DNA from: Bispira polyomma
Taxonomy: Eukaryota
Length of the DNA: 64,000 nt
Assembly (NCBI GenBank): GCA_965649765.1
Contig: OZ287749.1
Span: 22,630,001 to 22,694,000, forward strand
Direction: 5' to 3'
Every line of letters starts with the position of its first letter. The first letter of the stretch is position 1. The notes beneath the pieces are model-generated. The model searched no databases, was not told where the DNA came from, and saw only the letters and a list, made by a program, of their open reading frames with translations. This document shows positions 1,698 to 63,852 of this stretch, one piece after another. The position numbers and the translations under genes are program-made.

Positions 1698-1807
1698 TCA
1701 ACATGACTTCTTCCTTTTCAGTGCCCTTCTAGATTCATAGCAAATCCTATTGACCTCCTCTGTAAACATGGTGGGTTTCATCATAGGAAAGCGTGAAAAC
1801 ATATAAC
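1698..1807 (-). CDS. Alternative last exon 1 (BEN C-terminal segment)
   Basis: gtttttctttcag|GT then YMFSRFPMMKPTMFTEEVNRICYESRRALKRKKSC*. Confidence 0.85.
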
Positions 1808-2088
1808 CTGAAAGAAAAACAAACAATAGTTTAATAAGGACCATCGAACCCAAGGTCGGATTATATTTATTATACACCTCTCTCAGTTTATTTAATATAT
1901 TTTATTTATGAATAAATATAACCAATTTTTATGGTCCCAAAGCTTTAAAATGAGGTACAAGCAGAAATAATTGCTGTGCATACAGGAGATTGGACTTATA
2001 TACAGTCTACTGTACTTATGAGTAAGGCATAAGACTAACAACACAAAAGAAGTAACTCATTTCTGCTTACACAACACAGAGATATATC

Positions 2089-2207
2089 CTATTCTTTCTC
2101 TTTTTGACTTCTTCTTTGTAATAGTCTCCTACAATCCATGGATACTTGGGCAATAACAGAGGTAATAGTAGACGGCTTTAAAGTTGGGCATCTGCACAGA
2201 ACATAAG
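2089..2207 (-). CDS. Alternative last exon 2
   Basis: gtgttttcag|CT then YVLCRCPTLKPSTITSVIAQVSMDCRRLLQRRSQKEKE*. Confidence 0.82.
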
Positions 2208-3789
2208 CTGAAAACACAGGCAAATTGAACTGTTTAGCAAGATCATACTTCATTAAGGGATACTTGAAGATATAAAACTGTTCACGACCAACAAATATCA
2301 CACACCATTTAATCACCTTTTTTGATATTCCTAATTTGACAAAGTCATTTTACAGAGAAAAACTATTGTGTAGTACGGTATTTCAAATATATCAAGATAA
2401 ATGATAAAACACTTATTATACATGAAACGTGAATGCCGTTATAACAAAAATGATAGTATCCTTTTAGAGAGGCACTTGAGAGTATTTGCCTCAATTTGTT
2501 AAAAGAGTTTTATTTTCACCATTCATACTGTAATAATTTCTGGTAGTCCACCTTCAGCACTGGTTTCTTCCACCATAAAATCTGGCCATCGTGATATGAC
2601 TAACAAGTTCCTATTGCAAGAAACTGAAGGAGAATACAATAATATTTGGGGGGTATCGACTGCTTGCCAACAGACATAGGTTATTGAATTAAGATATGCC
2701 TTTGGCTGCCAGCTGACAACCTACTGAACCCAGGTGTTAAAAGTGTTAAGCTGTTGAAAGTAACGTAAACCAGGCTAAATTCAAATTCCATAACAAGGTC
2801 TAAAACTCAAGTCACATATGATAGCAAAATTACATTGATGATATGGAGCAGGAGACAACTACTAACCTTTTATATACTTCTAACAATCTTACATTGGACA
2901 GTGAGCCGTAATTCATTCAGTCTTAACCCAACAATTCACTGACCCGATTGACACAAGATACATCTTGACGTGTGGCTAGATTTTACACTGTCCTGTAATT
3001 AAAACTACTGTCCCTGGGCCGTCAGGCCTCTGATATTTCCCTCTGGAGAACGGTTTTACTTGATGCCCACATGCCCACATGTTTGAAGTTGGCGAGATCC
3101 TAATGCTGCACAGCTACCCTATATATCATATGGTTTGCAACTGGGGCAAATATGAGGCTCTTGCCATTGATAGTTATTTTGATATTACCCTTCCCCTACG
3201 AGATTCCAAGAAGTATCAGTGATCCTTTCACAAGAAAATCTGCTTAACTGGTACTTTTGCCCCAAGAGGGTTAAACACTAATAGATTTCACACCTGCAGC
3301 TTATAAGGTCAACAATTGTGTTAAAACAAACACTGCTAATTATAGTTTCTGAGATACTATGGCAACTCCTTACTTTTGAGACTAAAGGTCCATCCGTATC
3401 CGAATAACTATTTGAAAATGGATTTTGTTTTCTTCAATTTACACAGGACAGAAAATCCGGCCGAATAATGGGCACAGAATGAGTCTTTATGTGTTTACAT
3501 ATGTGAAATTTTAAGCTACTTTACAGGTCCTTAGTAAGGATCTGGATCTGTCAAAAATTAGAAATTAAATCTGTGTAAATTTTATCCGGGCCAGATCAGC
3601 GGATCCGTCTTCTACGCGTCTGCTTCCATTGTTTTATTTGTTTTAAAAAGATACAGATCTGCGATCCGGATCCGGCCTGTGTGTCCAACATTACAATCCA
3701 TCAAAAATAATGTGTGTAGAGTAGGACTAATGTAGAGACATCTGTTGAGACAGTCCTTGTACCATTGTAACGACACATCAGAAAATTAT

Positions 3790-4396
3790 TATTTACTATT
3801 ATTAAGAATTTTTAACACGCCTTATTGATGCTAGGCATCTTCTAAAGCGCAACAGCAGAATCATTGGTCCAATCATTAAGTCCATAGACATTGCAAAGTC
3901 GTAAGGAAGGAAGTGGGAGCGTGCACGAGGGAAGCTAAGGTGGGTAGGCAACATTAGAAAGATAGGTTTTAAGCTTTTTCCTAAAACCGATAAGTGTGTC
4001 AAATGATCTGAGGTCGACTGGGAGACTGTTCCATAACCGCGGAGCTGCAGTGGAGAACGCTCTGAATCCCGCCTTCCCGATTGGTCTGACCGAAGTGACG
4101 GAGAGTCTGTTGCCTCTCTTGCGGTTACTGAAGGAAAGAAGGGAGGCAAGGTAGGAGGGCTGTTGAGTGACTACAGCCTTAAAAGTAGTAACGTGAATCT
4201 TGAACAAAATGCGAGAATGAATGGGCAGCCAGCGTAATTTTTTGAGGTAAGGAGTGACGTCTGTGCACCAACCCAGGCGAAAAATGACCCTACATAGGCA
4301 GTTCCGGATGGACTGGAGCTTTTTAATATGTGACTTATTATAGAAAATGCTTAAGTGGCTCCAATTGACTACAAATTTCAAGGCTAATGCCACCAC
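3790..4396 (-). mobile_element. 5'-truncated LINE (L2/CR1 group): ORF2 C-terminus plus 3' UTR
   Basis: ORF 3935-4396 contains KLQSIRN..., VTPYLKKLRWLPIHSRILFK and GFRAFSTAAPRLWNSLP...FRKKLKTYL, typical of the post-RT region of L2/CR1-type ORF2; TAA-rich tail. Confidence 0.85.
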
Positions 4397-61719: not shown

Positions 61720-61900
61720 ACTGGCTTTCCTTCAGTAATCGTAAAAGGGAAAAAATAAAAAGAGACTTTCCGTTTCTGTGTTAAACCGAGCAAAAGGGCT
61801 GGATCTAAAGCTTTCTCTACAGCTGCCCCTGTGTTATTGAATAGTCTCCTTCTTGAGCTCAGATCACTTAAAACCTATCTCCTTATTAATTATCGTCAAC
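61720..61900 (+). mobile_element. Degraded L2/CR1-like LINE 3' fragment (co-duplicated at ~63240-63420)
   Basis: Translates as GSKAFSTAAPVLLNSLLLELRSLKTYL (copy: GSRTFFIAAHMLWNSLPVEL), matching the LINE at 3935-4396. Confidence 0.65.
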
Positions 61901-62892
61901 ACTAAACCAATTTTACATCAATAAAGTGCTGATGCGTACCTAAACTCAACTATTTTTTGTGTTTTCCAGTATAACTACCAATTTAAGTGTAAGATGATTA
62001 TTTTTTGTTTTTCACAGTATACCTTTAAATTTAAGTGCAAGATGAACATTGATGAAAGTTACAATTTTATCTAATTATTTATATTTATCCTACTTATATT
62101 TTGCTTTGGCGACAAGCCGTCAAATGTGCTTCGGAGCGCACACTAGAATTCAGCCAATAGAGAGTAAAACATATATGATAGAGTTGCAAAGCCTGGACTC
62201 GATGCATTGCTATATTTGTCAGAGTCGACCGATGCATTGATATCTCGACTGATCATCGCAGCTTTGTTGATCATTATACACATACATTCATACTTAAATG
62301 TGTGGGTGCTTTATATTGATATTTTACAGGTTCTGTCAATTTTAACCCTGATAAAAGTACATCGCCAGTAAATCTCCATTCACATCATGTACATTCTTAT
62401 GTTTAATAAGCTGCAAGCTGCTATCCGAGAAGCGATAGCTTGTATCCAACATTTACATTTCGCAGTACTATCCAATTTTATAGTCTGCTTAGCCTGAAGT
62501 ATTAAATTGCTTATTTGAGCTATCACCTTATTGCATAAAAATACCAAGTTTTACTTTCAATGTGGTAAACTTGTAGTCTTGTAAGATATAGACACTGGGC
62601 ACAAGAACCTTAAACTTGGATACTAAAACTAAAACTCAAAGATTTTATCTGCACAATATTGTATTCTAGACATTAAAACACAATAATACACCTGAGACAC
62701 CATTTCTAACAATCTAAGAAATTCCCTTAATTTGATAAATGTAGTAACATTTCTTTTTTTTATAATCTTCTCAGAAATATTCTGCGTACTGGTTTTTCTC
62801 TGTATTGGTTATCAACAAGTCTTACTGTTGCTGAGTACAACACATATCAATTTATTGGGCGGTATTTTAGACCAATATGGTATATCCTAGGA

Positions 62893-63017
62893 TTATTGTT
62901 TACTAGCAGGCGGCAATTCTCCGCGACGTCTCAAGCGTTCTTTTTGACCATGACATACTTTAGTGATGATCTGTACTATCTCAGGCATAGGCATCCAATA
63001 TCTCCGCTGAGTGAATT
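62893..63017 (-). CDS. Alternative last exon 45 (recent duplicate of exon 44)
   Basis: tatattttttag|AA then FTQRRYWMPMPEIVQIITKVCHGQKERLRRRGELPPASKQ*. Confidence 0.83.
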
Positions 63018-63727
63018 CTAAAAAATATAAAATGGAAACCTCCATTACCAGAAACCGGCATTCTGTTGGGTATTTTGTTCCACTACAATATTTATACTTC
63101 GATAGATTTTGAAGAAACTAAGAGAGAAAGATTTGGTCATAAATTTAAGTGACAATAAAAGTCACATCTGGTGCTTCCAGCTGGTATATATATATGCTAT
63201 ACTGAGACATCAACTTATATCCGCACTTTCTTACTAATCATTATACTGCCTTTCCTTCAGTGACCTCAAAAAGGGGAAAAAGAGACTTTGTTTCCTTTGT
63301 TGAACCTAACAAGAGAGCTGGATCTAGAACTTTCTTTATAGCTGCCCATATGTTATGGAATAGTCTTCCTGTTGAGCTTATATCACTTAAAACATATCTC
63401 TTCATTAGAATTCGTCAACACCGAACAGACAATAGCAATAACCTTAATGTTAGACACTAAACCTCAAAGATTTTATCTGCAAACTATTGTATTCCAGACA
63501 TTAGAACACCACACATACTTCATAAAATCGAAGACACCACATCACCACTTCTTAATCTTGGCAATGGTATGTGTATTTCTTGGGGAGCCTAAAACTTTGC
63601 ACTGTCTCGCGTGTACAGACTAGCAGTAGAATCTCTTCAAAAGACTGAAATAAAACCTACTGATGACCCAACCAAAAATGCATGCCTCTGGTCTCTTGAG
63701 TATGTTTGGATCAATCTAATGTAGTCT

Positions 63728-63852
63728 TTAACTGTTCGATATTGGGTTAAAAGTCCCTTTCTGGCGTAGAAATCTTCTCAAGCCTCTACAGACATGGTTG
63801 ATGTAATATGTGGTGTCACTGCCCTTCATTGAGAAGCGCTGGTATGCATAGT
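63728..63852 (-). CDS. Alternative last exon 46
   Basis: ctttattttacag|AC then YAYQRFSMKGSDTTYYINHVCRGLRRFLRQKGTFNPISNS*. Confidence 0.85.

Follow-up and report, generated by a model that had tools for sequence, protein, structure and literature searches.

A candidate BEN-domain gene in Bispira polyomma with 73 tandem last exons, each encoding its own version of the DNA-recognition helix

What is to be made of a stretch of DNA in which one short coding unit, divergent from copy to copy, recurs dozens of times on a single strand? The question is raised by 64,000 nucleotides (nt) of the Bispira polyomma genome (assembly GCA_965649765.1, 1.035 Gb), namely C2:22630001-22694000, where C2 is contig OZ287749.1; this whole stretch is called the window here, and 22630000 must be added to window numbering to give positions on C2. 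Peptides of the window were used to make a profile, which together with a regular-expression scan finds 48 related units spanning 1698-63852, all on the minus strand; no shuffled window exceeds 9.6 bits, and after refinement of the profile the units score 19-54 bits. A first-pass annotation, made from the letters alone, had counted 46 intact last exons of 101-245 nt among them, all in phase 1 and each with its own stop, and that count proves to be exact. The answer argued for below, which we consider very probable, is that these belong to one gene with three constant coding exons and 73 tandem last exons, a single one of which would be joined to each transcript so that alpha5, the recognition helix of a BEN domain, is swapped.

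A unit was classed as intact where a YAG acceptor lay 44-56 nt ahead of its I-N-x-x-C anchor and was followed by an open frame and a stop. By chance alone, 14% of sites would be expected to have YAG in one or other of the five slots allowed; T, a feature that played no part in the selection of units, is found at -5 in 71 and at -6 in 72 of the 73 acceptors of the full array. Each intact exon encodes BEN helices alpha4 and alpha5 and a short basic tail, and then stops. To see the whole array, 100 kilobases (kb) of flank were added on each side, bringing the sequence examined to 264 kb, without N. The suspicion that the array goes past 64000 was well founded, as 19 further last exons lie at 64743-78997 (in continued window numbering), and leftward there are 8 more, from -1357 to -23439 (C2:22606561-22628643), so that the 73 intact exons run from 78997 to -23439, extending some 15 kb to the right and some 23 kb to the left of the window. 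Strong matches to the unit peptides occur at this locus only in a genome-wide search.

If these are last exons, from where would the rest of the protein come? A genome search with PF10523 gives a minus-strand match, to positions 1-45 of the profile, 23.5 kb beyond the right edge of the window, on the side where the first-pass annotation had proposed to look for an exon encoding the N-terminal part of a BEN domain. This is exon C (87699-87495, minus), which encodes the BEN strands and alpha1-alpha3, ends in LD...VIK and has a phase-1 GT donor; ahead of it on the same strand lie exon A (88992-88872), with the ATG and an unnamed N-terminal domain, and exon B (88637-87973), a linker. Exons A, B and C, translated together as a frame check, are in frame, and exon C stops one base into a codon; all 73 acceptors, which share the strand of the constant exons, match the phase of its donor, and the junction codon is never a stop. 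It has also to be asked whether the units could be the ends of separate small genes, or microproteins with starts of their own. A few do hold an in-frame ATG, but when the 264 kb are searched with a profile made from homologs of exon C, just two sequences of this kind come out, exon C and the C' of a paralog described below, one per gene, implying that the units are without private BEN halves, in line with the earlier statement that none has a start exon of its own; the gaps between exons go down to 114 nt, and homology begins exactly at the phase-1 acceptor, at the position of an intron in a related leech gene. We find the separate-gene explanation scarcely credible.

At the level of sequence, then, the anatomy, the frame fit and the BEN identity of this gene are established, and it is highly likely that joins between exon C and the last exons are made in RNA. 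In each transcript the phase-1 donor of exon C would be spliced to a single acceptor, the last exon so chosen would supply its own alpha4-alpha5 to complete the BEN fold, together with its stop, and each mRNA would give an isoform of about 365-420 residues that combines a common scaffold and backbone-gripping surface with a different major-groove helix.

The BEN assignment itself needs some care, as the domain is divided between exons. Exon C alone scores 24 bits against PF10523 (cut-off 23.2) over profile positions 1-45, and a Pfam scan of 27 of the variable peptides gave no BEN match, these being too short. The only full-length annotated relative found, Helobdella robusta HELRODRAFT_183479 (UniProt T1FJQ8, 566 residues), was for this purpose used as the naturally joined, full-domain form, the array exons being searched separately. 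It has the same N-terminal domain and a complete BEN domain (36 bits, PF10523 positions 1-73), which is 60% identical over exon C and is interrupted by the same phase-1 intron after IK, beyond which comes one last exon of the array type; a second contig, whose last exon is nearly identical, agrees. A profile comparison places the window peptides on the last two helices of this leech BEN domain (hhalign, 95.9% probability). Its best sequence match in the PDB is NACC1 (E 0.002). A structural model of the leech domain, with a predicted local distance difference test (pLDDT) score of 69, has two strands and then five helices, the long alpha5 being last (a single-sequence fold was poor, pLDDT 48), and when it was submitted to Foldseek the ten best rows were all BEN-DNA structures (Elba1, NACC1, Insv, BEND6 and BANP), with template modelling (TM) scores of 0.49-0.61 and weak E values of 0.03-0.95. 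As judged by sequence and model, the array peptides and exon C together make up a split BEN domain, with the same fold and residue pattern as NACC1/NACC2, Insv, Elba1, BANP and BEND6, and with the order seen in NACC1, that is, N-terminal module, linker and C-terminal BEN.

What the last exons exchange can be read against NACC1, where alpha5 sits in the major groove, D462, T465 and R469 contacting bases and R468 and R472 the backbone (PMC11472053), in agreement with the statement in the first-pass annotation that the C-terminal BEN helix contacts this groove. It is the only helix to enter the major groove in the solved human BEN-DNA structures (PMC11472053). Alignment with NACC1 puts D462/T465/R469 at +2/+5/+9 and R468/R472 at +8/+12 from the anchor Ile. 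Over the 73 exons the base-contact-equivalent positions are among the most variable columns (entropies of 3.8, 3.5 and 3.7 bits) and form 68 distinct triplets; the backbone-contact equivalents are conserved basic residues (0.5 and 1.6 bits). The constant exon C holds alpha2, the alpha3-alpha4 loop (the backbone and minor groove grip) and the start of alpha4. On this pattern of residues the isoforms probably prefer different DNA motifs.

Whether the exons are maintained individually was examined in a related species, represented by one 1.4 Mb contig (ERZ22147071, ctg31187l), 55 kb of which was read and found to carry the constant exons and 28 units. There are 25 reciprocal-best exon pairs, in conserved order, with a synonymous divergence (dS) of 0.75 and a ratio of nonsynonymous to synonymous divergence (dN/dS) of 0.22 by a simple counting method (one pair being out of register); the ratio is 0.10 for alpha5 and 0.37 for alpha4 and the loop. 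The introns between exons cannot be aligned with those of the relative and share nothing beyond the acceptors, and conservation extends over each exon's own acceptor (0.75 vs 0.61). The base-contact positions are identical in 75% of cases between orthologs and in 8% between paralogs. Host fragments in public metagenomes carry exon C at 83-100% identity, and all of them break at the same donor; a scan of Joint Genome Institute (JGI) metagenomes gave five loci that were short or distant and had no units. These comparisons of coding sequence establish purifying selection on individual exons. They also bear on the suggestion that a single exon is expressed and that the others are for the most part dead copies, or serve as a silent store of donor sequence for gene conversion or DNA rearrangement. 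Such a view could appeal to the two decayed copies in the window, but 46 of the 48 units are intact despite a mean mutual identity of only about 26%, acceptors, frames and order have been kept across the divergence just given, and conserved acceptors would be needless in a conversion donor. No rearranged joints at exons are seen among the DNA-run matches listed; three public DNA runs (at most two samples, from one study that is possibly the assembly's source) agree with the assembly over 57870-63869. We regard this possibility as highly improbable.

Given a gene with so many last exons, how might one of them be chosen? By comparison with the relative, the only intron with conserved non-coding sequence is that following exon C. 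Element A1 (87433-87415, minus), 60 nt past the donor, has a core that is invariant in the four distinct genomes aligned, and its single exact reverse complement, B1 (84221-84203, minus), lies inside the other conserved block, B2/B1/B0 (84171-84353, minus), 3.2 kb downstream here and 4.7 kb in the relative. A nested helix A2:B0 (A2/A1 block 87388-87434; B0 84353; minus) and a third pair, between B2 (84186) and a C element (82785-82771, minus), are predicted in both species. Perfect 19-nt inverted repeats are common in this region (13 of 31 windows of 8.5 kb), so that the case for an intron stem rests on the conservation of both arms and not on its length. On balance the stem seems likelier to take part in exon choice than not to, and the conserved elements might instead act at the DNA level. 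Further elements of 12-17 nt in this first long intron (86694, 85745, 84653, 83299 and 80700, minus) are identical and collinear in the relative, and no pairing partner was found for any of these five.

Three modes of choice deserve discussion. In Dscam1 and chelicerate sDscam, intronic RNA pairing operates in cis- and trans-splicing (PMC9258826), and in a Dscam1-type scheme a docking site near the donor would pair with a selector before each exon. A highly conserved element 60 nt past the donor is what such a scheme would call for, but the complement of A1 occurs once (84221) and not before exons, and duplex energies of A1 with the sequence up- and downstream of the 73 exons equal those of shuffled controls (-21.1 vs -21.3), no selector being found ahead of individual exons. 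Docking by A1 is thus largely refuted, and choice of this type is very unlikely. A k-mer test gave no motif common to the exons besides the pyrimidine tract. Trans-splicing as in mod(mdg4) is a more serious candidate, if a doubtful one: the constant transcript would end in the structured intron, and the variable exons would be transcribed, wholly or in part, from internal promoters. That gene has constant 5' exons, upwards of 30 alternative 3' exons (about 31) and a last common intron with conserved motifs and RNA structure (PMC6237743, PMC13490949), which promotes trans-splicing and termination (PMC6237743, PMC13490949). The equivalent intron here holds the only conserved non-coding elements, in which nested long-range helices are possible in both species, and a cis route to the final exon would have to pass 72 acceptors over 111 kb. 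Against this, all 73 exons are co-oriented with the constant exons, 16 of the 72 gaps between exons are shorter than 300 nt, no conserved or shared promoter-like sequence was found ahead of the exons, and in 13 of the 72 gaps no canonical poly(A) signal is present, which implies that exons share 3' ends. Choice by competition in cis between acceptors and 3' ends is slightly favoured.

Several observations weigh against the one-gene reading or some part of it, and may conveniently be taken together. All three public sequencing runs found for the organism are of DNA; homolog searches found no spliced protein or transcript of the multi-exon gene in any relative, those with exon C returning genomic fragments that run into the intron and no transcripts. 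Leech genes manage with a single last exon, HELRODRAFT_183479 having one within the 10 kb seen of a gapped locus. The main helix of the intron stem shows no compensatory change. The comparison of orthologs covers only 7 of the 46 exons of the window (63852, 63017, 61091, 60602, 59702, 57911 and 56798), and the whole base-contact triplet is kept in only 9 of 24 ortholog pairs. Moreover, the other variable alpha5 positions behave much as the base-contact ones do (78% identical between orthologs, 13% between paralogs), so that the conservation signal is helix-wide and not special to those three positions. This last point, like the variation in tail length (16-73 residues after the anchor), would suit a situation in which the exons are used and the isoforms bind the same motif, or none, their variety serving protein contacts, localisation or dosage. 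We think this unlikely, as the swapped part holds the sole major-groove helix (PMC11472053), the backbone-contact Arg/Lys residues are kept while base-facing positions vary, and alpha5 is more constrained than alpha4.

As to how the array has grown, exons next to each other show higher identity than those far apart (0.37 vs 0.24), and in an exon tree adjacent exons cluster, the 8 left-flank exons forming a group, which together point to growth by local tandem duplication. Two recent events are visible, both on the minus strand: a tandem duplication at 61183..63421 (two 730-nt copies, 88% identical) gave exons 63017 and 61496, where the relative has one, and another at 26488..29024 (453 nt, 89% identical) gave exons 28920 and 26836. 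Exons 896954, 911293 and 915589 of the relative (ERZ22147071 ctg31187l) have no collinear ortholog here, and exons 72733, 61496, 59032 and 58774 have none there; unmatched exons on both sides imply slow birth and death.

The 46 intact last exons of the window, each identified by its acceptor-side position on the minus strand, are 63852, 63017, 61496, 61091, 60602, 59702, 59032, 58774, 57911, 56798, 54262, 53856, 53123, 52616, 51866, 50801, 50551, 49341, 46668, 46059, 45740, 45160, 44172, 43874, 42756, 42378, 39474, 38540, 37223, 35008, 33255, 32353, 28920, 26836, 25854, 24379, 22704, 20954, 19060, 17381, 15639, 12582, 10473, 6790, 2207 and 1807. One of the two decayed units (anchor 36649; 36590..36700, minus) has alpha5 whole, with a stop and a frame shift between its likely acceptor and the helix, and the other (anchor 28565; 28497..28600, minus) consists of a 3' part only, without an in-frame acceptor, where the duplicated block of 28.6-29.0 kb has its edge. 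Outside the window on the right, 76618-76347 (minus) is the sole exon with a 73-residue tail, and since the relative keeps a long tail (89 vs 91 residues, 78% DNA identity; L039 near 12670) this is probably functional. Non-coding features of the region include a high-copy interspersed repeat of about 180 nt at window 59917-60095, minisatellite-like tandem repeats in introns (window 25902-26447, 43368-43599 and 47586-48171), and at window 3797-4399 (minus) a fragment that by our own reading resembles the 3' end of the reverse-transcriptase frame of a long interspersed nuclear element (LINE), with an inverted copy at -10925. The array is bounded on the right by the gene for mitochondrial ribosomal protein S30 (L010:7419-7850, L012:1660-2484, minus) and on the left, just past its last exon, by an exon with a weak fn3 match (L015:2823-3692, plus).

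A paralog lies head-to-head with the main gene on the plus strand (99625-121349), with A' at 99625, C' at 106926 and four last exons (110576, 117473, 120505 and 121237). These plus-strand units were considered as antisense exons of the mod(mdg4) type and rejected, having constant exons A' and C' of their own. The paralog is without the conserved intron stem, and its N-terminal domain is interrupted at a different place from that of the intron in the main gene. A third gene with this domain (131511-136824, plus) encodes it without an intron; after it come two open frames, 171 and 389 residues long, that have no Pfam match. In all, the domain is encoded at no fewer than 22 places in the genome, 20 of 22 being on C2 between 4.7 and 84.2 Mb, some of them paired, and each such gene may have a last-exon array of its own. 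In mollusc and annelid proteins the same domain is joined to C2H2 fingers, FLYWCH or a homeodomain, so that these proteins end in a complete domain where the present gene contributes half of BEN. Atlas clusters with the domain in molluscs carry the names 'isoform X25' and 'isoform X9', suggesting many isoforms, and related genes with many isoforms are probably present already, undescribed, in automatic annotations; no pair of isoforms with different ends was found among the members of the one N-terminal-domain cluster compared. Five other BEN matches in the genome (C4:85061127, C4:59426710, C8:44600682, C13:11238796 and C1:55894263) cover only the first 48-60 profile positions and are perhaps split at a similar place; the genome-wide search found no array of the unit peptide type near them.

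How far is such a gene new? The earlier suggestion of a layout like that of mod(mdg4) or lola, with constant 5' exons and many alternative DNA-binding 3' exons, is upheld at the DNA level. Lola combines BTB with zinc fingers; the gene described here has an unnamed N-terminal domain and a split BEN domain, and more than three times as many alternative exons. The constant part of lola is spliced to 20 alternative 3' exons by a mixture of cis- and trans-splicing (PMC6237743, PMC13490949). With mod(mdg4) the likeness lies in constant 5' exons, many alternative 3' exons and a conserved, structured last common intron; the difference is that its exons, trans-spliced from internal promoters, lie on both strands and the 73 here on one, where trans-splicing is a possibility, and that here the splice would cut through the DNA-binding domain, exchanging only two helices. 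No BTB match was found by Pfam in exons A and B or in the leech protein, which places the gene outside the mod(mdg4)/lola family, and the likeness of layout is not homology. Dscam1 and sDscam likewise have dozens of tandem paralogous exons, but these are adhesion proteins with internal or 5' variable exons and per-exon selectors, of which none were found here, while the leech gene, with the same domains and phase-1 intron, has one last exon. The suggestion that the architecture is without precedent holds in part: in the open literature (subscription journals being missed) no BEN gene with alternative exons for alpha5 was found to be reported, but a BEN domain in an alternative 3' exon is already known, since isoform C of mod(mdg4) is listed as BEN-containing, the whole domain lying in its alternative 3' exon and no single helix being swapped (PMC4281564). 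The array is real and conserved, and it represents a known gene layout with an unusual switch inside a domain.

TTK-BTB is described as arthropod-specific (PMC11426971), and we would guess, by analogy, that the N-terminal domain here multimerises as BTB does in mod(mdg4). The fullest version of the proposal is that some 70 BEN factors with distinct motifs, their exons chosen with the aid of an RNA stem and possibly by trans-splicing, come from an undescribed annelid/mollusc family whose N-terminal domain has taken the role of TTK-BTB by independent origin; this could well be so, although we stop a little short of calling it probable.

If RNA confirms the joins, this would be the largest array of alternative last exons in a transcription factor, as far as has been searched or is known (mod(mdg4) having about 31 and lola 20), and the first in which only the recognition end is exchanged while the rest of the domain scaffold stays fixed. 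Nature would then have provided a library of 73 helices that all sit on the same BEN scaffold, making the BEN recognition code directly testable, and there would be an independent, non-insect case, with candidate intron elements already mapped, in which to study the choice of one last exon among dozens. The array also leads to a gene family, at least 22 strong in this genome, whose members share the unnamed domain, and, if the reading is true, a single gene could yield dozens of transcription factors with different targets.

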